Below, in pieces: positions 1 through 15,264 of a stretch of 15,264 nucleotides of DNA. The notes below the pieces were generated by a model that saw only the letters and a program-made list of their open reading frames with translations, did no database searches and was not told the origin of the DNA. The translations under genes and the position numbers were made by a program. Where the stretch lies: the NCBI RefSeq assembly GCF_000143415.4, contig NW_003314528.1, positions 1-15,264 of the forward strand, read 5' to 3'. The stretch is from Selaginella moellendorffii. Taxonomy: Eukaryota; Plantae; Lycopodiophyta. Each line of letters starts with the position of its first letter. The stretch's first letter is position 1.

Positions 1-220
1 AAGGAGTTTTAAAGAGGGGCGGGAAGACGGCAGGTCCAGCCAGTCAGGCTCTATAGACTTGAAACCTCAGAACTGTGTTGACATTTTCAGTGAAGGTGCA
101 TTGGATTTGATGGATTTGATAGATATTCATAAACCAACTATTCCAGCTTGCAGGGATTAGGAACTCTCTAACTGCTTCTAGCTTGTTCAGCTCTCCTGAG
201 ATTCGGCAGATATTAGTCAC

Positions 221-412
221 CTACAAGGCAGCATTCCTCTCAGCTTTCCGAGCATACTTCTGTTAAACTCCAACAAACTGGGAGGCCATCTTCTCGGGTG
301 AGCCTTCCAAAAATTTCAGCTCCAATGCGACCAACAACAGGTTTGAAGGCAGTGTTCCATCAAGGAACTTTAGCAGCAACCAAACAAGTTGTCTGGGAAG
401 CTACCAACTCAA
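221..412 (+). pseudogene. Degenerate plant LRR (receptor-like) gene fragments
   Basis: Manual translation in shifting frames gives LQGSIPLSF, LLNSNKLGG, NNRFEGSVP and LSGKLP, which fit the plant extracellular LRR consensus LxxNxLxGxIP. They are broken by stops and frameshifts; boundaries are approximate. Confidence 0.5.
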
Positions 413-769
413 TGTGAACCACTGTACCAACACCAATATGAGAATTGAAGAAACTCTTTGCGTCGAGTCCTTGTTATTGATCATGATTGGGTTCAATGGT
501 TGACTCTTCCCCATGGCCTGGTTCAATTAAAGTTTGCATTGTTAGTGCAAAATGGTCCTGGGATCCAAACTTTCAGCCAGCTGGAGGGATGGATGCTGTT
601 GGAAAATGGTTGGACAGGCAGGACCTTCTACACCGGTGCCAGGTGCTCTACCAGTGAGCTACCTGCCTTGGTTGTGTGCATGTTCAGCTTAGTTCTAACA
701 GATGCTGCCATTTACTCTATTTTATGAGCTCTCAACACAGGAGTAATCCAGCTTTCCCTACCTAAGAGC

Positions 770-955
770 AAAAAATCGATCGGGGTAGCACCCCTGGTAC
801 AAGGGTTGCTAGTGGCATATATGTTTTCAATACAGACAATATCAGAAAATGAATATAAAAAATCAAAATGGTCGAGACGAGCATTTTTCCAAAATAAATT
901 GCCACCGTATGCAACTTGTTACCCTGCACCCTTGCAACCGTGCCTGATCGTTTTT
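770..955. repeat. Degenerate inverted repeat, possible old MITE
   Basis: The left arm (aaaaaatcgatcggg...ggtacaagggttgctagtggcatatatgtttt) loosely matches the reverse complement of the right arm (aaaaacgatcagg...gggtaacaagttgcatacggtggcaatttatttt), around an AT-rich core. No TSD identified. Confidence 0.3.
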
Positions 956-1103
956 CAGGCCTAGGCTCTCCAGCTTCGGTCCGCTCATTCTATCAAGGGC
1001 TGCAATCTCTACGTTTGCAACACTGGAGCTGATATTTGTTTTTGTGCTGAGACTGGGCATTGTTCCCGCATTTTACCGGTGAATCTTCGCAAAGCAAGCC
1101 ACT

Positions 1104-1153
1104 ATCTAATGCCAATTTGGCATTAGATGTCCTTTGGCATTGCCAAAGGACAT
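1104..1153. repeat. Two abutting perfect palindromes upstream of the Pin-II gene
   Basis: atctaatgccaa-t-ttggcattagat (1104-1128, 12-bp arms) and atgtcctttggca-t-tgccaaaggacat (1127-1153, 13-bp arms). Confidence 0.9.
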
Positions 1154-1294
1154 TCAGCTCGCCCGTCACATCCGTGGTGAGAGGGCTTATCTTACTGCAT
1201 TAAGATATCCATTGTGTCAAGGACACACGTTTTGAACATTTCTAAAGCACCAATGCTGGACTTCAAAAGCCCATCAGATCTGCAATAGAGAAGT

Positions 1295-2133
1295 ATGGCT
1301 GGAAGCGGCAATCTCCCCGTGCTCGTTCTTCTTCTGTTGGCCTCGTTATCCTGTGAGAGAGATCTCCACTTGTATGTTCGATTCTAACTCGGACTCCTGT
1401 TCTTGCAGCTGCTCAAGGTGGTGTCGTCGAGGTTTGCAATGGTGACCTCACCTATACCGATTGCAGCAACTGCTGTAGTCTGAAGAAAGGTTGTGTCTAT
1501 CTGCAACCTGGTTCAGGACAAGTCACTTGCATTGGCGGTGATTCAAGGGCTTGTACCCGGGAGTGCCAAGGTCCGAAGTTGGCCGTATGCCCATTGCCTT
1601 CATCAGGATTCCCAACATCAGGCATCAAGGTGCTCAAGGGAAAACTCCCACCCCGACAACCTGGATGCGGTTACTACAACATCGTTAACGGTGACCCCAT
1701 CCCGCGGCTGGAGCAGCAGGGCACAGATCAAGGTAACCGCCTTGTTCATTATGTTCAGGAAGCTCAGCCCTCTCCGATAGAGCTCATGGCAGGAAGGAAG
1801 TGTAAGCTTGATTCGATTGTGGAGGTCTGCAATGCCGAGGTCTCCAAAGATAACTGTGGTTGCTGCTTCGGGAAATCCGGTTGCATCTACTTGGAGAATC
1901 CATCCGCAAACAGCACCTGCCTGCCTACTGAAGACCCCATGGGGGTTTGCGCCCTCGTTTGCCTGCCCAGAGTGTCCATTTGTACCAAGTCTGTAACTTT
2001 TCAGGGCACCACCCTGCAGTCTTGCAGGAATGCACGCCGCAGCTGCGAGGACATGAAAGAGGGCTGCAGTCTCTACGATCGCAACACCGGAGCTGATCTC
2101 TGCGCTGCAGGGGGTATCGCTCTGCCTGTCTAG
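1295..2133 (+). CDS. Secreted multi-repeat potato type II (Pin-II / I20-like) serine proteinase inhibitor; exons 1295-1352 and 1409-2133 (~260 aa)
   Basis: ATG at 1295 starts a signal peptide (MAGSGNLPVLVLLLLASLS). A phase-1 intron 1353-1408 (GTGAGA...TTCTAAC...TTGCAG, 56 nt) joins in frame to the 1579-2133 ORF. The product has CSNCCSLKKGCVY...TC...RACTREC...AVCP and a second repeat NCGCCFGKSGCIY...TC...VCALVC...SIC, matching the Pin-II pattern CTNCCxxxxGCxY...KACTREC. An intron right after the signal peptide is typical of Pin-II genes. Confidence 0.8.
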
Positions 2134-2149
2134 TCTAGTTGCTGAAACT

Positions 2150-3275
2150 AGTTATGGGCATTACTATTATGAATGAATAAGGAATGTCCCTCCTTGGAGG
2201 GGCCGGTGTCAATGTCCGAAGTTACTCGCCATGCAATTTGTGATGGAGTGTAGGAGAAATATTGTATCTTCCTCTGGATCGATAGGAAAGTAGGGCAGGT
2301 CCTTGAAGAAACCGATTCTTTGAGGTTGGGCTGGAAAAGTATCTTGGTCGCCAGCATCGACGTCAAATAGAGGCGCAAGAACGAGCAGGTCTTTTGTGAA
2401 TTTAGAAGTACAATGGGAACACAACATGAATCAGAATAAAGTAAGAAAGCAAGAAAGAAATTCTGGCTTAGATCACATTTTCTCCAATTATAATTTAACA
2501 AAGATTAAGCAAAGAGAAGGCTGCACTATGTCTGACACTGGCTGTGGACAATACAAGGAGATTGAAGCGATTGGATTCTGAAATTGTCCCCCGTGTCGAC
2601 GTTAAGTTAACAGTCGTACTATGGAGGAGAAATGTTGAAGAGGTGTGGTGAGAAACCATGCGGACAGTAATATTCAGGATTAGAGCATTCTCCCAGACCC
2701 TTTTGTATGTGCACTTAGACATGTTGATAATTGTAATAATCTGCTTGCTAGTGATTTTTGCCGGGTTTGTGGACGATTTCGAAGTTGTATTCTTGTAGTA
2801 AAAGGAACCATCTTGATATTCGACCAGATAATCGGCTTGTTGATGGCTGGAGCTAGAATCCATTGTCCTTGAGCCAAGTGGCTATGTCGTTGCTGGGAAG
2901 CCTAGGAATATGGTGTGTGACGTATCTGAGGTGCCAGGGTGGATGAGCTGGCATCTTTCTCTTCAGATCAAAGTGCTTGCCCTGTTAGGGTTCTTGAGAC
3001 CCGTAACTGTTGGTAGGCTGATCATGTGGCGCTCGATTGCTGGTGATAAATGGTAGAGATTTGTTGACCGAATTGATTTGGTTTGACTTGGCTTGATTGA
3101 AGATCAATGGTGGATATTGCTGATGAAGTTAACTCAAGTTCAACTGTTGATATCTGCTGAGGTGGTGTTGATCCAACGGTAGCTTGGAACTTATAGATTT
3201 TTGCTACTGTTTGTTGCTGAAGTTGGTGGATGAGTTCGTGTTGAGTCGAGTTGAGTTGCGTCTAACTGGGTTGAG
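2150..3275 (-). pseudogene. Decayed sequence 3' of the minus-strand Gypsy integrase, possibly an accessory ORF remnant
   Basis: Several broken minus-strand ORFs (2209-2427, 2495-2863) lie co-oriented downstream of the integrase remnant. No domain recognised. Confidence 0.25.
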
Positions 3276-4341
3276 TTAAAGTTTGGCTACCGGTGATTGT
3301 CGATTGTTGGTTTCAAGGTGTTTGTCGGTTCTGGTTGGAAATTTGCTGAGGTGCTGATGCTGAACAACGTGATATGGTCGAAGCTTGTTGAGGTTGACGA
3401 TCTCAGTGAAGTCTTCAGCGAGTGTGCTGACTTTGACAGTGCCATTGGGGTAGAGTGCAATGATTTTGAAAGGTCCTTTCCAGTTGGTGTGGAGTTTCCG
3501 GCCGAGTTTGCCGATGGGTCCCTGGTACCAGAGAATATGATCGTTGACGTTGTATTTCAGGGGGTTCCAAATGTATAGTAGGGATAGTGGGTAGTTCGGG
3601 CATGGTTGACCAACCTGAGGCATAGTCTCACTCTTGCTTGTGTGCCTATTTTTGTTCTGCGTCCAACTTATGTCTAAGCCCAAGTTCCATTCCATGTTAG
3701 TTGGTGGAATACCCATATCCTTGCGTTATGCCACCGGTATGCTGAAATAGTGCCAGACTCCATTTGGCTCCATTTTGTGTGTTCGTCTTAGCATAGGGAT
3801 GCTGGATACTCTAGAACTGTTCCAAGTCATTCCGTGCTTTTATCCCTTCACTCCTTGGGCTGTATGCTCGGGAGTCGTTCTGTACTCCAGTGCCATTGCT
3901 CCTTGGTTCCATGTTTGGGAGTTTGGCTGATGGGTCCTTGGTACTAGAGAACATGATCGTTGATGCTGTATTTCGGAATGTTGTGCCGGGATGCTTGTCG
4001 ATCATGCTGAGCTTTTTGCTGTTTTTGGATGGTGTGAAGTGTCTAGAGGGCGTTGGGTTGAAGCTCGTCAAGACATTCGAGTTGTTGAAGCCTTTCTCAA
4101 ATTGCATGTTGAGATTATACTTGACGGTGACTCGCATGCTCGGGACGATGAATTCAATTGGCGTGATGGCTTCTGTTCCAAAGGCGAGTTTTAATGGCAT
4201 CATGTCGGTGGTGACTTTATACGCAGTTCGATAGGCCCAAAGTACGTCAAGAAGTTTTTCATCCTAGTCTTTGCCGGAATCATTGATGACTTTCTTGAGG
4301 ATGGTCTTCAATGTTTTGTTTGTTGCTTTTGCTTGACCATT
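3276..4341 (-). pseudogene. Non-chromovirus (Athila/Tat-like) Ty3/Gypsy integrase remnant
   Basis: Minus strand reads NGQAKATNKTLKTILKK...D*DEKLLDVLWAYRTAYKVTT...LAFGTEAITPIEF (end of the integrase core) and KLHTNWKGPFKI...VNLNKLRPYH (GPF module). It has stops, frameshifts and an internal insert at ~3558-3927. Confidence 0.85.
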
Positions 4342-4806
4342 TGTAGCGCATGTGATTTTTACCCTTTATCCTATGGTGCTTTACCATAGGATAACCACAG
4401 AAGCAGAATTTAAACCCTCTAAACCCTCCATGTGTGACATGTCATGTGCCACGTGTCACATGCCATGTGTCTAAAGGATAGTTGTGTGGAACCCAAATTT
4501 CAAGGCCTTAGGCCATTAAATGAAGGAATGGTGCCAAACTTCCAAACATGGAACCAAGGAGCAATGGCACTGGAGTACGGAACGACTCCTAAGCATACAA
4601 CCCAAGGAGTGAAGGGATAAGAGCACAAAATGATTTGGAACAGTTCTAGAGTATCCAACATCCCTATGCTAGGACCAGCATACAAAACGGAGCCAAATGG
4701 AGTTTGGTGCTATTTCAGCATACCGGTGGCATAACGCAAGGATATGGGTATTCCACCAATTAGCATGGAATGGAACTTGGGCTTAGACCCAAGCCAGACG
4801 CAGAAC
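3654..4806. repeat. ~274-bp inverted repeat pair (3654-3927 / 4533-4806), ~605-bp spacer
   Basis: 4533-4806 (gccaaacttccaaacatggaaccaaggagc...gacgcagaac) is the reverse complement of 3654-3927, with scattered substitutions. Confidence 0.92.
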
Positions 4807-5682
4807 CTCCCTTAGTACCAAGAGTTAGTCTCTGGGACAAGTCAATAAGCTATCATCCAGTGATATTGAGGGATTAGTCTCAATATACGTGTAAGCGACT
4901 AATTTTTCCATTTTACTTTAGTCACTTAACCACACCTCCGACCACTTGGAGGAGTCTCATTCACAACCTCCATAAATCCCAGTTAGGACTTGGGGCTTGC
5001 TAGCCCCGAGAATGGCATCCATGCCACTCAACCTTTGCACTTGGTCTAAGTGCTCCACGTGTCCGATCCCATGACCGACACCCCAAGGTACCACCGACAT
5101 ATCGGCCCGTTACGCTAAGGCCATGCCCATTCACCTTGGTCACCCCGGTGGTTCAACACCACCTGTATTACAATCCCGTCTCTCAAAGACTAGGCCATCC
5201 ATCCATGAGTGGCTATCCCAGATCCACTCTATAGCATCCTTAGGATGTCTGCAGACATGGGGAATAGCCTTTCCCAATATCTCCTTTTCGGTCCCCACCA
5301 AGTCCCTTCCTGTCCATGGCCGTGTTCACCAACACTGCCACTGGATCAAGGCCCACAGGCCCAATGACTAAGTCCAACAGTCCTCTGGGACTTCCTCACG
5401 GTGTGACTGTGTCCCTTGTCACCATACTAGAGGGCTACTCCTCTTCCTTTCCATAGTCTGGGACTTTGGGGCAACATTTTGGAACACCGTGGCCCTACGC
5501 GAGCCTCGTGGGTACTCTCCTCGCCTTCTGCCTTTGGGTGCTCTAGCCATGGGTTTAGAGTGAGGTTCCGTTGAGCCACACCAGGTATCCAAGTAGGTAG
5601 TGCCACCCACACCTGGACTGGGAGCATCAGCCAGTCGATCTCCCGAGGGAACTAGAGCCGGCTCTTGAACACTTCACCAAGC
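4342..5682. mobile_element. Non-coding LTR-like block of another element, truncating the old integrase
   Basis: Integrase homology stops abruptly at NGQA and TGTAGCGC begins at 4342 (LTR-like TG start). The block has no convincing ORF. It contains a 12-bp IR (4366-4394), CACGTG/ACATGT palindrome clusters (4431-4470) and (TAAACCCTC)2. Its other end is not seen because the chromovirus LTR begins at 5683. Confidence 0.45.
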
Positions 5683-6698
5683 TGTAAGGAACCAACTCGC
5701 CGAGGTGTCGTAGGCTAAAGGAACCCCAAAAGCATGACCAAAATGACAAAGAGTTTATCGGATGGGACCAAGTCGAAGATTGAGTCCAAGACCGACTCGG
5801 AGACCGAGTTCGAGATAGAGTCCGAGATCGAGTCTGAGACCGAATCCGAAGTCGGATCCGAAATCGGGTCCGAGATCGAGCTAGAGACTAAGTCCAAATA
5901 CTAATACGGGTCAAAGGGTGAAAGCCCAAAGCGTGCGTCTCCCAAGGGGGGGGGCGGGGGGGGGTGGGGGGGGGCTGCAGGGGGTTCCAAAAGTATAGTA
6001 GGGATAGTGAGGTCCAGGAACCAGTTTTGAAGGGACTCTCCAGTTGGGCTTCCAAACCGACTTGAGGTTGAGACTGGGACCGAGGGGCCTTGGGTGGGAG
6101 TGAGCATGGACTTGGCTGGTGCCGGAGGGGCCATCCAAGGAAGTGCTCAAGAGCAGCTCCCACTCCCGAAAGGGAAACCAATTGCGGTGCTCCCGGCTCA
6201 CGTGGAGTGGTGCCCCACTTGAGTACCATGCGGCTCATTGGTCCTTGCCCTTCCTAGGGGCTTGGACCTTCCTTCGGGATGGAAGTGGGGGGGTAGAGGT
6301 ACCCATACCGGGCTGCTAGGCCATGGTGTTCCGCCCTGGCGTCCCGAAGCAAGTGTTGCACTCAAGACTTGGGATTTAGAGGGTCCCATGATCAAGTCTT
6401 GTGGTACCAAGGGATGTTAGGAACCTGGAAGCTTGGTGTGCTTGGCTGCTTGTGCTTGCGGGGAGTGTAGCCGAACCTTAAGTCCAGTCTAACCCGGGGA
6501 GGGGGATTGGGAGTGATTTGGGAATCCGTGGATGGATGGCTAACACTCCGTTGCTCGTGCAGTGAGTAGCTAAAACTAAGTAGGAGCTGGTACCATAGGC
6601 GAGAACCTTGGCAAGGGAACTTAGCAAAAGCCAAGGCAGTGTTGGACGGATAGTCAAGGTAAGCTGGCAAATTGGAAAGGAAAAATTTGTGGCTTACA
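5683..6698 (+). repeat. 5' LTR of the older (outer) chromovirus copy, 1016 bp
   Basis: TGTAAG...CTTACA termini; homologous to 7417-8501 and 14336-end; followed by a mutated PBS TAGTATCGGAGCC (6702-6714). Confidence 0.95.
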
Positions 6699-6757
6699 AT
6701 CTAGTATCGGAGCCCTTTCCTCAGTTCTAGCGAAGGATAGAGGCGGATTGCTGGGAG

Positions 6758-7416
6758 ATGGCAAGGGCAGGGCGTAAGCGAACCCAGGCGGAGATGGAAC
6801 CTCCACCAGAGCTGGAGCCTCCGGTCGAACAAAAGGCTATGGATGAGGAATCCTTGCATGAGGAGGACTCTAGTGAGGAAACTTCCAAGTAGGAGTCCGG
6901 TGGCGAAGTTCGGTCGTCCAAAGCTCGATTGGACGTTCTAGAAGGTCAATTGGCGCAGACCAATGCCCTGCTGGAGACTCTCGTACGCAAGCTAAAGCGT
7001 GACGAGAAGCGGAAGAAAAGGCGAAAGACTGCGGATGCTGGCAGCGCAGAAGGTGCGGACCCTTTGGCAGGGACTGAGGCAGAACCAAACAAGGTCGAAC
7101 AAACCGAAGTAGAATCAGTCCCTCAGGAAGTTCCCAAGTACAAACCAAAGCCCCCACCGGTCTTCAAGGGAGTGAATGACTATAAGGTGGTGGAGGATTG
7201 GTTTTACGATATGGAGGACTACTTCCGAGCGTTGCGATTACAAAGCTCGGAGAAGGTCCCATGTGCAAAACCATACTTGGCAGATAATGCCAAGTCTTGG
7301 TGGAGAACGACGAAGGCCAACGAAGGACCAGTGGCCACTTGGGACATGATGAAGGCGAGGATCCGCGCAACATACGTTCCTCCGAATGCCACTCTACATC
7401 TGAGAGATGAGCTGAG
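6758..7416 (+). pseudogene. gag: 5' part of gag of the outer copy, interrupted by the inner element
   Basis: Near-identical to 8561-9219. In-frame TAG at 6890 (CAG in the inner copy). Ends at ...LRDELS where the LTR starts at 7417. Confidence 0.93.
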
Positions 7417-8501
7417 TGTAAGGAACCAACTCGCCGAGGTGTCATAGGCTAAAGGAACCCCGAAAACATGACCAAAATGACAAAGAGTTCATCGGATGGG
7501 ACCAAGTCGAAGATCGAGTCCAAGACCGACTCTAGGACCGAGTTCGAGATAGAGTCCGGAATCGAGTCCGAGACCGACTCGGGGGCCAAGTTCGAGTCCG
7601 AGTTCGAGACCGAGTTCGAGTCCGAGATCGGGTCCGAGATCGAGTCCGGAATCGAGTCCGAACTCGAATCCGAAGTCAGATCCGAAATCGGGTCCGAGAT
7701 CGAGCCAGAGACTAAGTCCAAATACTAATACGGGTCAAGGGGTGACCCAAAGCGTGCGTCTCCCAGGGGGGGGGGGGCTGCAGGGGGTTCCAAAAGTATA
7801 GTAGGGATAGTGAGGTCCAGGAACCAGTTTTGAAGGGACTCTCCAGTTGGGCTTCCAAACTGACTTGAGGTTGGGACTGGGACCGAGGGGCCTTGGGTGG
7901 GAGTGAGCATGGACTTGGCTGGTGCCGGAGGGGCCATCCAAGGAAGTGCTCAAGAGCAGCTCCCACTCCCGAAAGGGAAACCGATTGCGGTGCTCCCGGC
8001 TCATGTGGAGTGGTGCCCCACTTGAGTACCATGCGGCTCATTGGTCCTCGCCCTTCCTAGGGGCTTGGGCCTTCCTTCGGGATGGAAGTGAGGGGCGAGA
8101 GGTACCCATACCGGGCCGCTAGGCCACAGTGTTTCGCCCCGGCGTCCCGAAGCAAGTGTTGCACTCAAGACTTGGGATTTAGAGGGTCCCATGATCAAGT
8201 CTTGTGGTACCAAGGGATGTTAGGAACCTGGAAGCTTGGTGTGCTTGGCTGCTTGTGCTTGCGGGGAGTGAAGCCGAACCTTAAGTCCAGTCTAACCCGG
8301 GGAGGGGGATTGGGAGTGATTTGGGAATCCATAGATGGATGGCTAACACTCCGTTGCTCGTGCAGTAAGTAGCTGAGACCAAGTAGGAGCTGGTACCATA
8401 GGTGAGAACCTTGGCAAGGGAACTTAGCAAAGGCCAAGGCGGTGTTGGACGGATAGACGAGGTAAGCTGGCAAATTGGAAAGGAAAAATTTGTGGCTTAC
8501 A
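7417..8501 (+). repeat. 5' LTR of the inner element, 1085 bp
   Basis: TGTAAG...CTTACA termini. Roughly 9 substitutions and a few indels relative to the 3' LTR over the ~920 bp comparable (counted by eye). Confidence 0.97.
7505..7720 (+). repeat. CpG-rich 6/12-bp tandem array (GAGTCC/GAGATC-like) inside the LTR
   Basis: Repeated cgagtccgagat units; also at ~14424-14640. The copy in the outer LTR (~5770-5895) is 90 bp shorter. Confidence 0.9.
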
Positions 8502-8504
8502 ATT

Positions 8505-8517
8505 TGGTATCGGAGCC
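8505..8517 (+). promoter_or_regulatory. Primer binding site, initiator tRNA-Met type
   Basis: TGGTATCGGAGCC, 3 nt after the LTR; one A>G difference from the canonical plant TGGTATCAGAGC. Confidence 0.92.
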
Positions 8518-11362
8518 TTTTCCTCAGTTCTAGCGAAGGATAGAGGCGGATTGCTGGGAGATGGCAAGGGCAGGGCGTAAGCGAACCCAGGCGGAGACGG
8601 AACCTCCGCCAGAGCTGGAGCCTCCGGTCGAACAAGAGGCTATGGATGAGGAATCCTTGCATGAGGAGGACTCCAGTGAGGAAACTTCCAAACAGGAGTT
8701 CGGTGGCGAGGTTCGGTCGTCCAAAGCTCGATTGGACGTTCTAGAAGGTCAATCGGCACAGACCAATGCCCTGCTGGAGACTCTCGTACGCAAGCTAAAG
8801 CGTGACGAGAAGCGGAAGAAAAGGCGAAAGACTGCGGATGCTGGCAGCGCAGAAGGTGCGGACCCTTCGGCAGGGACTGAGGCAAAACCAGACAAGGTCG
8901 AACAGACTGAAGTGGAATCAGTCCCTCAGGCAGTTCCCAAGTACAAACCAAAGCCCCCACCGGTCTTCAAGGGAGTGAATGACTATAAGGTGGTGGAGGA
9001 TTGGTTTTACGATATGGAGGACTACTTCCGAGCGTTGCGGTTACCGAGCTCGGAGAAGGTCCCATGTGCAAAACCATACTTGGCAGATAATGCCAAGTCT
9101 TGGTGGAGAACAACGGAGGCCAACGAAGGACCGGTGGTCACTTGGGACATGATGAAGGCGAGGATCCGCGCAACATATGTTCCTCCGAATGCCACTCTGC
9201 ATCTGAGGGATGAACTGAGTAGGCTGAAGCAGACTGGAACCATCCAGGAATATGTGAATGGGTTCATGGCAAAGAGGATACTTGTCACGGACATGGGGGA
9301 TATGGATGCGTTCCATGCCTTCATATCAGGTTTGCAAACCTGGGCTCGCGGTGAGGTGATGCGCTGGAACCCGACCAACTACAAGGAAGCGTTGGATGCG
9401 GCCATCAAGGTGCATTTCAACGATAACCTGCGAAAGGGGAACATGACGGGGTCGGGATCCACGTTTAGCAAAGGGGCCAAACCAAGAGGAACGTATAGCA
9501 GAGGGAAATTCAAGAAGAGTTTCTCTAAGAATGAGTCCTCGGGGTTCCGGAAAGGCAAATCCGGTGGCCAATGAGTGAGTACGTGGGGGAGTCAAGCGAA
9601 AAGAGACAAACCCACGGATAAGAAGGTTAAATCATATAGCAACGTGGGAAACAACGTATGCTACAACTGCGGTGAAGCGGGACACTTCTCGAGGGAATGT
9701 CCCTACCCGAAGAAGGCCAGAGCCAATATGGCCATCAAGTCGGGTGAAGTCCAAACTGAGGTATGTGATCCAGTCCTTAACTCAAAGTTACTCATTACAC
9801 GAGCAACTTTGGTAGAGAGTCGTTCGCGACATCTACTAGCCCTCCGAGGGAAGCTCGAAGGTAGCTTTGTTAAGATCCTTATTGACACGGGTGCTTCGGA
9901 TAATTTTGTGGCTGCAGACATAGTCCGGCAAGCCGGACTAACGGTGCAGCGGCTAGGCGAACCAAGGACTATAGAGTTTGTTCAAGGTAGCCAAAGCACC
10001 GATGAGGTACTTCGACAAGCGAGAGTCGAAGTAGGGACATGGAAAGTAGACATGGATTTCACCGTGTTGGACATGGCGGGATTTGACGTGATCTTCGGAA
10101 TGGATTGGTTCAATCGGTTCGTGGTAGCCCTACATGGACAAGGTAGGAACCTTGTGGTATTGGCGAATGCCCAAGGAAGAAGATCCAGGGTGGAGGCCTA
10201 GGATCTAAAGGTAGGGCAATGCAAGGCTAAAGATTCATGCCTGAACCTGGTGTCCACAAGAGGACAACTCACTAAAGGTACCAAGGCTACATTTTTGTGC
10301 TTACTCTCGGTGAGAAGTGACAAAAAGACAGGAACAGAAGAAGTACCTTTAGTGATCCAGCGGGTGTTGGACCAATTCCAGGATACCATGCCGGAGGAGC
10401 TACCGGCATGGTTGCCCCCCGCACGACCGATAGAACATAAGATTGAGCTGGTCGAGGGTGCTGAGGCGGTGGTTCGTCCACCCTATCGATTGAACGAAAA
10501 AGAACTTGCAGAGCTCAAGCGCCAACTAGAGGAGTTGGTGGACAAAGGGTATGTTAGGTTGAGCAAGTCGCCATATGGGGCGCCGGTGCTATTTGTGAAA
10601 AAGAAAGATGAATCTATGCGCATGTGCATAGACTACCGGTTGCTCAACAAGTATACCAAGAAGAACAAGTACCCTTTGCCAAGGATTGAGGACCTCTTCG
10701 ATAGGTTGGGAAAGGCAAAATACTTCTCGAGGATTGACCTAAGGTCAGGATACTACCAGATCAGGGTAGCCAAGGAAGATGTCGAGAAGACAACCTGTCG
10801 AACGAGGTATGGGAGCTTTGAGTTTTTGGTGATGCCCTTTGGGCTGTGCAATGCGCCGGCAACGTTTTCGGCGTTGATGAACCACATCTTTGTACCCTAT
10901 CTGGATCACTTCGTGGTCGTCTATATTGACGACATCCTGATCTATAGCGAGACGCTAGAGGAGCATGCCGAACACTTGGCGAAGGTGTTTGAGAAACTAA
11001 GGGAATATAAACTGTATGCTAAAGAGAGCAAATGTGACTTTGCTCAACAAGAGGTAAAGTTTCTCGGGCATGTGGTGGGCCAGGACGGGCTCAAGGTGGA
11101 CCCGGAGAAGGTCTAAGCGATCCAGGAATGGGAGCGACCATCGAATGTACATGAGTTGAGGGCGTTCTTGGGGCTATGCAACTACTATCGAAAGTTTATC
11201 AGACACTATTCGAGAGTAGCCCTGCCCTTAACGGATCAAACGGGAAAAGGGAAGATGGTATGGACAGCGGAATGCGAGGCGGCATTCGTCCACCTCAAAG
11301 GGAAGTTGAGGAAGGCTCCGGTGTTGGCATTACCAGACTTTGGTAAGGACTTTGAGGTAGAC

Positions 11363-11957
11363 TGTAAGCAACCAAAGGGAACGACTCGAGAGACGATCCA
11401 TAGGGGTTCAAATATAGAGGGAAAGGGCCCATGAACAAGAGTGCACCCCCTTTTCCAATCGGTTAAGGGTCTTGGGATACTTGGGGTTAAGCGTCCTTGG
11501 GTTTGAATAGTACTGGGCTGGTTGACCTCCCGGGAAGTCCAAATTCAGGAGCTTACATTTGGTATCGGAGCGGTCTCGGGTCCGACTCTGTTGGTTGGCT
11601 AGGGGAATCACACCACATGTTGATTGACATCTGGTTGGTCCAGTTTACTCCCGCTGGGCTCGACCCGAGGGGTAGGGTGTCAAGAGAGCGAGGCTCTCGG
11701 GAGAGCTGCGGCTCTCAGCTTCCGTTCACGAGGGCGTGAACTTGCAGGGAAGCGTGGTGGATTGTAAGCAACCAAAGGGAACGACTCGAGAGACGATCCA
11801 TAGGGGTTCAAATATAGAGGGAAAGGGCCCATGAACAAGAGTGCACCCCCTTTTCCAATCGGTTAAGGGTCTTGGGATACTTGGGGTTAAGCGTCCTTGG
11901 GTTTGAATAGTACTGGGCTGGTTGACCTCCCGGGAAGTCCAAATTCAGGAGCTTACA
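11363..11957 (+). mobile_element. Cassandra-type TRIM (non-autonomous LTR retrotransposon with 5S rRNA-derived LTRs), 595 bp
   Basis: Two identical 195-bp LTRs (11363-11557, 11763-11957; TGTAAG...CTTACA), PBS TGGTATCGGAGC (11560-11571), 205-bp non-coding interior, PPT-like tract, and a perfect 5-bp TSD TAGAC (11358-11362, 11958-11962). Confidence 0.96.
11486..11540 (+). promoter_or_regulatory. 5S rRNA-derived internal Pol III promoter segment (A box to C box) in the TRIM 5' LTR; second copy at 11886-11940
   Basis: GTTAAGCGTCCTTGGGTTTGAATAGTACTGGGCTGGTTGACCTCCCGGGAAGTCC aligns without gaps at 46/55 positions to the plant 5S rRNA segment as I recall it (GTTAAGCGTGCTTGGGCGAGAGTAGTACTAGGATGGGTGACCTCCTGGGAAGTCC). 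Confidence 0.92.
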
Positions 11958-13034
11958 TAGACACGGATGCTTCGGACTTTGCGTTGGGCGTAGTTTTGAA
12001 GCAAGACAACCATCCAGTAGCGTTCTTCTCGAAGAAGCTGGACAAGGCTCAACGGAAGTGGCCTGCCCACGAGAAGGAATTGTTTGCGGTGGTCAAGGCG
12101 CTCAAGGAGTGGCGACACTACCTTGGGAGACACTTCAAGGTTTACACGGACAATGTGGCAACGAAACACTTCTTGTCACAACCCGACCTGAGAGGGAAAC
12201 AAGGTCGGTGGGCCAATGCCTTGGCCGAGTTTGATTGCGAGATTCTGTACAAGCCTGGGAAGAGCAACATCGTGGCAGATGCGCTAAGTCAAAAAGCAAG
12301 CTTGAGGTTGGCGATCTCCAGTGCAACAGCAACCTTCTGGGACGATGTGCGGACAGCATATGAGAACGATGGTCTAGCACAAGAAGTGTTGTTGAGGAAT
12401 CTGGAGGCGCGGGAAGCTCACCAGAGAGGTGAGCTGCCAACGGAAGAGAAAACGGGCTATGCGGAACGCAACGGACTCATTTATTACAAGCAAACGAGGG
12501 TGTATGTTCCAGAAGGGGGACTAAGGAAGGTAGCCTTAGAAGAGTGTCATGACGGACCTCTTGCGGGACACGGTGGAGTGCCCAAGACGATGGGCTTACT
12601 CAAGAGGAAGTACCATTGGCCAGATATGGCTAAGGACGTCCAAGACTATGTAAAGACATGTCCAACATGTCAGCAGGTCAAAGCCGTGACTAAGGCTAGT
12701 GGGGGCTTGTTGCAAAGCATCCCAATTCCAGATCGTCCGTGGAAATGTCTCACGATGGACTTCATCACGGGACTACCCCCAAGTGAGGGGTTCGATGCGA
12801 TATTCGTGGTGGTGGACCGATTTTCAAAGATGGCACATTTCATACCCACCACAACGGACGTGGATGCGGAAGGTGTGGCGAAGCTGTTCTTCGAACAAGT
12901 GGTTCGAGTGCGGGGAAGGCCAGAAGAGATTATCTCAGATCGAGATAAGATCTTCACTAGTAGGTTCTGGAGGACACTCCTGGAACAGTATCGCACCAAG
13001 TTGAAATTCAGCACCACCTATCACCCACAGACAG

Positions 13035-13081
13035 GTAATGGGTATTAAGTCAAGATTGATGGCACTAACACTTCTTGACAG
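13035..13081 (+). other. Predicted spliceosomal intron 1 in the integrase core (47 nt, phase 1)
   Basis: CAG|GTAATG...CACTAAC...TTGACAG|AT. Removal gives CAC CCA CAG ACA GAT GGA CAA ACG GAA AGG = HPQTDGQTER. Confidence 0.88.
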
Positions 13082-13499
13082 ATGGACAAACGGAAAGGGT
13101 GAATAGGCAGCTGGAGGATTATTTGCGATACTATGTCTCGGGAGACCAGACCGACTGGGTAAGTCATTTGGGACTTGCGGAAATGTGTTATAACAACTCA
13201 CCACATTCGAGCATCGGGGTGAGTCCATGGGAAGTCATCAATGGGCGAGCTATTGAAGGTCTTGTGGAACTCGGCGTGGCCGAGTATCATGGAGAGCTAC
13301 CCGCCGTGGAGACATTCACGGCGGAAAGACTCAACATTTGGAATTTAGTGAGGGATTCCTTGGAACGGGCTCAACAAAGGCAAACTAAGTACGCGAACCA
13401 AAAGCGTCGGGATGTGGAGTTCCAAGCTGGGGAGAAGGTGTGGCTGAACACCAAGAACCTCAGGCTACCAAGTGGGATCAGCCGAAAGTTGACCCAAAG

Positions 13500-13550
13500 G
13501 TAAAATGCATGTATTCCTGTAAATGAATTGATCTTGAGTTCCTTAAGCAG
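13500..13550 (+). other. Predicted spliceosomal intron 2 before the GPY motif (51 nt, phase 2)
   Basis: AAG|GTAAAA...TTAAGCAG|GT, AT-rich, with an in-frame TAA. Removal gives KLTQRFAGPY. Confidence 0.88.
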
Positions 13551-14027
13551 GTTCGCGGGGCCTTACGAGATTGAGGCACGAATCGGTAAAGTGGCTTACC
13601 GACTCCGACTTCCTCGAGAGATGGGGAAGATGCACCCAGTGTTCCACGTGAACTTACTCAAGCCGTACTTTGAGGATCTGCTTCGCAAGGACCAAGTAAG
13701 ACCTTTACCCGAGGTTATCCAAGGGGAAGAGGAATACGAAGTCGAGGCCATCCTCAATGTGCGCAAGAGCAAGCGACAAGGACGCGAGGTGAGAGAGTTC
13801 CATGTGAAGTGGAAAGGATTTCCACACTGCGAAGCAACATGGGAACCGGAGGAGAACCTAGCGAACGCGTGAGATCTAGTGGAGGAATTTCTGCAAGGCA
13901 GAACTCTATGTACTTATGCAAAGTTCAATTAAAAATATCAATTTGCAAAGTTGAGCAAGTGGCATGTGTTGGGACCCGAAGGCGCGCCGAAGGTAAGCTA
14001 ATTAGCATGGGTTAGCTAGGTCGACCA

Positions 14028-14192
14028 GGCGTAGGGAGCTACGCCCGACTCCCTGCGGGGATGTCGAATCCGTAGACGTATTCTACGGAGGTTGGGTTCG
14101 AGTCCCAACCCCCTAGTAAAACAAGGCTGGGTTCAAGTCCCGACCCTATACTAGGGCGTGGTGAGGTGAGGAGTATAGGGACACCTATATTC
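14028..14192 (+). other. Hairpin-dense 3' UTR domain with two tRNA T-arm / B-box-like motifs
   Basis: Consecutive stems at 14028-14045, 14046-14066, 14069-14089, 14090-14110 (loop TTCGAGT), 14111-14156 (inner loop TTCAAGT) and 14171-14192. Confidence 0.7.
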
Positions 14193-14294
14193 CGTTGTCA
14201 TGAGCTCTTGGCTGGGGAGGCTAACTTAGGCACACCGCTAAGTGGGGGGATGCCCCCGGAGACATGGTCAACAAGTCGTAGGATAAAACGAGAC

Positions 14295-14335
14295 GTTCGA
14301 TGTGGGCATCGAACTTCTTCTATGGGTGGTGGAGT
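14295..14335 (+). promoter_or_regulatory. Pre-PPT hairpin and polypurine tract
   Basis: gttcgatg-tggg-catcgaac hairpin, then GGGTGGTGGAG (14324-14334) directly before the 3' LTR. Confidence 0.85.
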
Positions 14336-15264
14336 TGTAAGGAACCAACTCGCCGAGGTGTCGTAGGCTAAAGGAACCCCGAAAACATGACCAAAATGAC
14401 AAAGAGTTCATCGGATGGGACCAAGTCGAAGATCGAGTCCAAGACCGACTCTAGGACCGAGTTCGAGATAGAGTCCGGAATCGAGTCCGAGACCGACTCG
14501 GGGGCCAAGTTCGAGTCCGAGTTCGAGACCGAGTTCGAGTCCGAGATCGGGTCCGAGATCGAGTCCGGAATCGAGTCCGAACCCGAATCCGAAGTCGGAT
14601 CTGAAATCGGGTCCGAGATCGAGCCAGAGACTAAGTCCAAATACTAATACGGGTCAAGGGGTGAAAGCCCAAAGCGTGCGTCTCCCAGGGGGGGGGGGCT
14701 GCAGGGGGTTCCAAAAGTATAGTAGGGATAGTGAGGTCCAGGAACCAGTTTTGAAGGGACTCTCCAGTTGGGCTTCCAAACCGACTTGAGGTTGGGACTG
14801 GGACCCTAAACCCTAAAACCGCCTTGGGTGGGAGTGAGCATGGACTTGGCTGGTGCCGGAGGGGCCATCCAAGGAAGTGCTCAAGAGCAGCTCCCACTCC
14901 CGAAAGGGAAACCGATTGCGGTGCTCCCGGCTCATGTGGAGTGGTGCCCCACTTGAGTACCATGCGGCTCATTGGTCCTCGCCCTTCCTAGGGGCTTGGG
15001 CCTTCCTTCGGGATGGAAGTGAGGGGCGAGAGGTACCCATACCGGGCCGCTAGGCCACGGTGTTTCGCCCCGGCGTCCCGAAGCAAGTGTTGCACTCAAG
15101 ACTTGGGATTTAGAGGGTCCCATGATCAAGTCTTGTGGTACCAAGGGAAGTTAGGAACCTGGAAGCTTGGTGTGCTTGGCTGCTTGTGCTTGCGGGGAGT
15201 GAAGCCGAACCTTAAGTCCAGTCTAACCTGGGGAGGGGGATTGGGAGTGATTTGGGAATCCGTA
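14336..15264 (+). repeat. 3' LTR of the inner element (cut by the window; about 168 bp missing)
   Basis: Starts TGTAAGGAACC after the PPT; colinear with 7417-8333. Confidence 0.97.
14804..14820 (+). repeat. Interstitial plant telomere repeat (CCCTAAA)2 in the 3' LTR only
   Basis: ggacc-CTAAACCCTAAAACC-gccttggg replaces ggacc-GAGGG-gccttggg, the form present in the other two LTR copies. Confidence 0.9.

Follow-up and report, generated by a model that had tools for sequence, protein, structure and literature searches.

The window analysed here is a stretch of 15,264 nucleotides of the lycophyte Selaginella moellendorffii (NCBI RefSeq assembly GCF_000143415.4, contig NW_003314528.1, positions 1 to 15,264 of the forward strand). 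Its first part (72-2182) belongs to a tandem cluster of near-identical Pin-II-like paralogues, also found in L012 and L013, two loci retrieved from the same species, in which each gene has the same short first intron (56–61 nt) and a repeated gene of 198 residues is interleaved with them. The cysteine-rich gene of the window, which gives only a weak Pfam Pin-II match (E=0.03), is 99.9% identical in DNA to a locus on scaffold GL377638.1 encoding SELMODRAFT_446573. The window also contains the degraded integrase tail of a different gypsy-type family (3279-4263, minus strand; ...KLHTNWKGPFKI...), which is uninterrupted at the site equivalent to intron 2 described below, together with a 274-nt inverted repeat (3654-3927 and 4533-4806, 91% identity). 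From position 5683 onward, the window contains two copies of a single Ty3/gypsy chromovirus family, the inner one nested in an older one. The features relevant to this analysis are the following:

1295-2133, plus strand: Pin-II-like host gene, with a 56-nt intron at 1353-1408 (GTGAGA...TTCTAAC...TGCAG).
5683-7416, plus strand: outer copy of the chromovirus family (5' LTR starting with TGTAAGG at 5683, PBS and start of gag), cut off by the insertion of the inner copy and 94.3% identical to 7617-9220 of the latter.
7417-8501, plus strand: 5' LTR of the inner copy (TGTAAG...CTTACA), its end inferred from the CA terminus located 3 nt before the PBS because the 3' LTR is cut by the window end.
8505-8517, plus strand: putative primer binding site TGGTATCGGAGCC, of the initiator-Met-tRNA type with one mismatch to the usual plant form.
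8561-9574, plus strand: gag ORF (Pfam Retrotrans_gag, 2e-13), ending at an in-frame TGA (9572-9574) that precedes the CCHC zinc knuckle; the same frame continues after the stop.
9575-11357, plus strand: zinc knuckle, aspartic protease, reverse transcriptase (RT) and start of RNase H (Pfam zf-CCHC, RVP_2 and RVT_1, 9e-40), with stops TAG at 10199-10201 and TAA at 11114-11116.
11363-11957, plus strand: nested TRIM-like miniature LTR element.
11958-13034, plus strand: RNase H, integrase zinc finger and catalytic core up to ...YHPQT, the end of exon 1 (Pfam RT_RNaseH 3e-29, Integrase_H2C2 2e-21, rve 1e-11).
13035-13081, plus strand: intron 1 (47 nt, phase 1), four codons before the catalytic Glu of the D,D,E triad.
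13082-13499, plus strand: exon 2, with the rest of the catalytic core (DGQTERVN...) and the first part of the C-terminal SH3-like domain.
13500-13550, plus strand: intron 2 (51 nt, phase 2), inside the SH3-like domain.
13551-13872, plus strand: exon 3, with the rest of the SH3-like/GPY domain (Pfam SH3_Tf2-1, 2e-16, profile positions 23-63 only), the chromodomain (PF00385 Chromo, 3e-14) and the TGA stop.
14324-14334, plus strand: polypurine tract GGGTGGTGGAG, its role inferred from its position directly upstream of the 3' LTR.
14336-15264, plus strand: 3' LTR, cut by the end of the window.

The inner copy thus shows the organization of a Ty3/gypsy chromovirus (Metaviridae), with LTRs of roughly 1085 nt with TG..CA termini, a PBS, a PPT, Pfam domains in the order gag(CCHC)-protease-RT-RNase H-integrase along one frame, and a chromodomain at the integrase C-terminus, although the end of its 3' LTR and its target-site duplication lie outside the window. 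The insertion interrupts the gag of the outer copy exactly at an LTR terminus. The two LTRs of the inner copy differ by 13 substitutions in 916 aligned nt (K2P 0.0144) plus a few indels. The 5' part of the LTR (7539-7704 and 14455-14583) is built of degenerate short tandem units (GAGTCCGAGATC-like), and the LTR of the outer copy lacks 90 nt of this array. The 3' LTR carries at 14804-14820 the sequence CCCTAAACCCTAAAACC, about two and a half units of the plant telomere repeat, whereas the 5' LTR and the LTR of the outer copy have GAGGGG at the same place. Rfam and tRNA scans of the window found nothing.

The first-pass annotation had pointed to two AT-rich GT...CAG inserts in the integrase gene, and we confirmed this observation with exact coordinates. 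Intron 1 reads GTAATG...TTGACAG, contains CACTAAC at 13063-13069 with the branch A 13 nt from the 3' splice site, and splits a GAT (Asp) codon. Intron 2 reads GTAAAA...TAAGCAG and splits an AGG (Arg) codon; only weak candidates (TTGAT) for a branch site (consensus CTRAY, 10–40 nt upstream of the 3' splice site) could be seen in it. Their GC contents are 38% and 33%, respectively, against 51% in the exon between them, and both sit at MAG|R proto-splice sites (ACAG|A and AAAG|G). Read unspliced, the frame ends with ...YHPQTGNGY followed by TAA at 13046-13048 and is full of stops downstream; with intron 2 alone retained, it ends with ...KLTQR and TAA at 13501-13503. Removal of both inserts restores YHPQT|DGQTERVN and KLTQR|FAGPY. 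Exon 2 aligns from its first residues with HPQTDGQSER of the solved Ty3 integrase (7Q5B, residues 1264-1389). By homology with E152 of HIV-1, found in PQSQGVVESMN, the Glu of this motif is the third catalytic residue and, therefore, intron 1 separates D,D from E. The comparison with the Pin-II host intron made in the first-pass annotation also held: removal of the 56-nt GT...CTAAC...AG intron at 1353-1408 reproduces the product of the gene annotated at the 99.9%-identical locus, and a paralogue has an intron of 61 nt. The 46–52 nt of the chromovirus introns are close to these two values, the only host introns compared, and the intron-length distribution of S. moellendorffii is reported to cluster with those of fungi rather than with other land plants (PMC6157073). 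The LTR divergence given as ~1% was about right. Chance is not a serious alternative for two inserts both bounded by GT/AG, both at MAG|R sites, both restoring the frame and invariant motifs, and both conserved in other copies.

Other interruptions of the coding region were also considered as possible introns and rejected. The 570-nt break between RT and RNase H might have been a third, large intron, but it has no usable GT/AG in frame and corresponds to the 595-nt TRIM-like element (11363-11957), with identical 195-nt LTRs (TG..CA), a PBS (TGGTATCGGAGC) and a TAGAC target-site duplication (11358-11362 and 11958-11962). Its removal together with one copy of this duplication restores DFEVDTDAS. 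Its termini (TGTAAG..CTTACA), PBS and PPT-like tract closely resemble those of the chromovirus in which it sits, suggesting that it is a non-autonomous partner mobilised by this family. The in-frame stops at 10199 and 11114 are single C>T-type changes of Gln codons that are intact (CAA) in another copy (copy Y, see below); they are private transition-type mutations despite LTRs only 1.4% apart. Finally, the GTGAGT found right after the gag TGA at 9572, a site covered by no other copy, could be a splice donor, but the stop would stay in the exon, so that it explains nothing. With three in-frame stops and the TRIM-like insertion in RT/RNase H, this particular copy is dead.

To find out whether the introns are a family trait, we looked for other copies. 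A word-index search with exon 2 gave only two weak hits, and a search with the RNase H-integrase piece gave nothing above 51% identity in either of two protein libraries, so that the family is not represented there in the lengths searched. A metagenome scan gave only GC-rich, degraded algal fragments, a scan of viral contigs gave nothing, and exact look-ups found no record of the gag ORF or of the entry labelled P0271, while the locus of the entry P0270 (L014) contains no copy of the family. By contrast, the genomic surroundings of the host gene's paralogues contained two more copies on GL377638.1, in locus L013 (270046-290884, reversed; positions 1-6473). Copy X is 5'-truncated and covers window positions 12564-14630, whereas copy Y covers 8234-13093, lacks the TRIM-like element and runs off the locus end, its remainder lying in a 1.7-kb gap between L013 and L012. 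X and Y are arranged internal-LTR-internal and share one LTR, the central ~560 nt of which does not match the LTRs of the window. Copy Y has a 466-nt deletion (window 9430-9895) and a mutated RNase H DTDAS motif. The copies differ from the window copy by 6.8% (X) and 5.3% (Y), and from each other by 2.1%.

Both copies carry intron 1 and the only one that reaches the second site, X, also carries intron 2. The inserts are a family trait rather than damage to one copy. Whether the inserts occur only in the window copy and whether their splice sites are conserved while their interiors diverge had been set beforehand as tests, and both came out in favour of introns: GT and CAG are unchanged in both introns and CACTAAC in intron 1, whereas intron 1 is 46 nt long in X and Y and intron 2 is 52 nt long in X. 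Within the aligned coding stretch 12564-13848, these two 1-nt indels, both inside the introns, are the only length differences; X also has a 22-nt deletion at the very end of exon 3. The split Asp codon differs synonymously (GAT against GAC) between copies. We found no support for extra constraint on the introns themselves, as their divergence between copies (4 of 97 sites) is not lower than that of the 3' non-coding region (3.5%).

Since the introns are shared, they were present in the common ancestor of the copies. Copy-to-copy divergence (5–7%) is several times the LTR-LTR divergence of the inner copy (1.4%), so that this copy was made by reverse transcription well after that ancestor, from an intron-bearing template. 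All differences between the copies also arose while the introns were present, and those in exon 2 are strongly biased: compared with copy X, exon 2 shows 14 synonymous against 5 non-synonymous differences (dN/dS 0.09, binomial P=2.7e-6), a ratio similar to that of exon 1 upstream (0.11), and 12 of the 19 differences fall at third codon positions of the spliced frame. In unspliced RNA, exon 2 lies beyond a stop and in a shifted frame. Selection of this kind implies that the 47 nt of intron 1 were removed before translation, although splicing is inferred here from selection and not from transcripts. Exon 3, which is too short and too damaged in X to be informative, shows no significant constraint (4 synonymous and 5 non-synonymous differences, dN/dS 0.34, P=0.11). 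These comparisons rest on only three or four copies, all of them defective; X and Y are neighbours sharing an LTR and may not be fully independent, intron 2 is confirmed in only one other copy, and template switching or gene conversion between copies could spread an insert without each lineage having replicated with it.

The closest outside relatives are about 43% identical in protein and include Haematococcus lacustris and Closterium gene models, seed-plant and metagenomic chromovirus ORFs, and Ty3. All of them read through both sites without interruption and with no residues missing, the algal ones in a single frame. The inserts are therefore gains in the Selaginella lineage and not intronised coding sequence. 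An introner-like origin, which predicts near-identical copies in many unrelated genes, found no support, since neither intron recurs elsewhere in the roughly 78 kb of Selaginella sequence examined (the window plus 62 kb of S. moellendorffii loci).

We consider it likely that the two inserts are genuine U2-type spliceosomal introns that became fixed in one chromovirus family of S. moellendorffii after it separated from its known relatives. In this view, the full-length transcript that is reverse-transcribed keeps both introns, which is why daughter copies inherit them, and, translated as it stands, would give Gag, protease, RT, RNase H and a catalytically incomplete integrase that stops just before the catalytic Glu. 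Only transcripts from which the host spliceosome has removed both introns could encode a complete integrase with its catalytic triad, SH3-like domain and chromodomain. The family would therefore rely on two RNA forms, unspliced RNA as template and spliced RNA as messenger for integrase. Our analysis demonstrates the anatomy of the introns, their presence in diverged copies (intron 1 in three, intron 2 in the two that reach its site), selection on the downstream exon in the spliced frame and the absence of the introns from outside relatives; by contrast, splicing itself, its partial character, the packaging of the unspliced form and a resulting limit on the amount or timing of integrase are inferences. 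The interpretation in the first-pass annotation is thus partly supported. Its claims that these are intron-type inserts in an LTR retrotransposon integrase and that they survived retrotransposition hold, and splicing receives indirect support, but the preferential packaging of unspliced RNA and a splicing-gated integrase remain hypothetical. It also regarded the sequence after intron 2 as an added GPY module and chromodomain, but this intron does not sit between modules: it cuts the SH3-like domain near position 22 of the 64-position Pfam model, so that its retention would truncate a fold rather than omit an add-on.

Alternatively, the introns might be spliced but be neutral passengers without any regulatory role, which entered a master copy by chance and persist because a large share of transcripts escapes splicing of such tiny introns, with a reduced supply of integrase merely tolerated and no packaging discrimination. 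We hold this model to be less likely, but it remains reasonable. Nothing in the sequence marks the introns as packaging or export signals, they are unique sequences with no Rfam match, their divergence is not lower than that of the non-coding 3' region, and intron retention is the common splicing outcome in plants. However, if spliced RNA were packaged as readily, intron-less daughters that need no splicing should arise and outcompete, yet all copies reachable here keep the introns after 5–7% divergence under selection, in a sample too small to weigh this argument. A more speculative and rather unlikely possibility is that the introns were captured by reverse splicing of host intron lariats into the element's own genomic RNA at MAG|R sites and then fixed by its own reverse transcription, which would be a natural, self-contained instance of the classical reverse-splicing model of intron gain. 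They would then be maintained because they benefit the element: splicing could mark the messenger as 'host-like', giving exon-junction-dependent export and translation and escape from the RNA silencing that targets intron-less transcripts, and intron retention could distinguish the RNA that is packaged.

Two other explanations are very unlikely. The inserts might be disabling insertions, never spliced, in a non-autonomous lineage that uses integrase supplied in trans by intact relatives, as all copies seen are defective somewhere and non-autonomous partners such as the TRIM-like element exist in this genome, but exon 2 would then be untranslated and drift instead of showing a dN/dS of 0.09 with third-position bias since the intron-bearing ancestor, and random insertions would not both carry GT...AG, a branch site and proto-splice-site flanks, nor keep them across copies. 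Likewise, the copies might have multiplied by segmental duplication or unequal recombination of a single element modified after insertion, without the introns ever passing through RNA, as the tandem cluster of the host region and the LTR shared by X and Y could suggest, but the window copy is inserted LTR terminus to LTR terminus into the gag of another copy, lies on the other side of the host gene and in the opposite orientation compared with X and Y, has LTRs five-fold more alike than the copies are to each other, and is the only copy with the TRIM-like element.

LTR retrotransposons copy themselves through RNA, so that introns should be lost; the loss of an artificial intron was the original proof of retrotransposition, and a 2025 review names only Ogre and EVADE as plant exceptions (PMC12786077). 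Literature searches gave Ogre, EVADE/copia, BARE and Cer1 as precedents but, Repbase entries aside, no report of introns in a Selaginella or other chromovirus integrase. The family described here offers a compact natural system to ask how an element separates template RNA from messenger RNA, whether splicing rations integrase independently of RT, and how introns can be gained, given that this RNA is reverse-transcribed as a matter of course. It is also a practical warning, since ORF-based TE annotation will score such families as broken.

Plant chromoviruses (Tekay, CRM, Reina, Galadriel, Tcn1 and the unclassified Selaginella chromoviruses of Neumann et al. 2019) share with this element the domain order gag-PR-RT-RH-INT-chromodomain and the LTR/PBS/PPT layout (PMC6317226), but the best protein matches are only 43–51% identical and no introns are reported for these clades in the papers examined. 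Penelope-like elements and bdelloid Athena/Terminons (see PMC8557442) are retroelements whose genomic copies keep spliceosomal introns, but they belong to a different class, without an LTR-integrase mechanism, and use target-primed reverse transcription. In Cer1 of C. elegans, env-bearing gypsy/errantiviruses and retroviruses, the unspliced genomic RNA also carries functional splice sites and must escape splicing to be packaged (PMC10309623), although splicing produces there an accessory or env messenger and no pol domain is interrupted. Ty1/copia elements with subgenomic splicing (Drosophila copia, Arabidopsis EVADE, barley BARE) use the host spliceosome to make two RNA forms with different coding capacity from one LTR element, with the unspliced form as template (PMC5580714, PMC3735527), and the two RNA forms proposed here are similar to the two RNA pools of BARE. 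However, splicing removes most of pol in those elements to give a gag-only messenger and the unspliced RNA encodes the complete polyprotein, whereas in our model the unspliced RNA is the incomplete one and splicing completes integrase. The closest parallel is Ogre (Ty3/gypsy, Tat/Ogre lineage) of pea and Medicago, in which a spliceosomal intron kept in genomic copies interrupts the polyprotein frame, must be spliced to translate the downstream pol domains, and is spliced in only part of the transcripts (Neumann 2003 and Steinbauerova 2008, as cited in PMC6317226 and PMC12786077). The Selaginella element likewise keeps in its genomic copies introns that interrupt the polyprotein frame and would work like Ogre, but it is not a member of that clade: Ogre has one intron, between gag-protease and RT-RNase H-integrase, belongs to a non-chromovirus clade of legumes and has experimentally shown splicing, whereas here two introns of about 50 nt, whose splicing is inferred, lie inside the integrase of a lycophyte chromovirus, one in the catalytic core and one in the SH3-like domain, and RT and RNase H do not depend on splicing.
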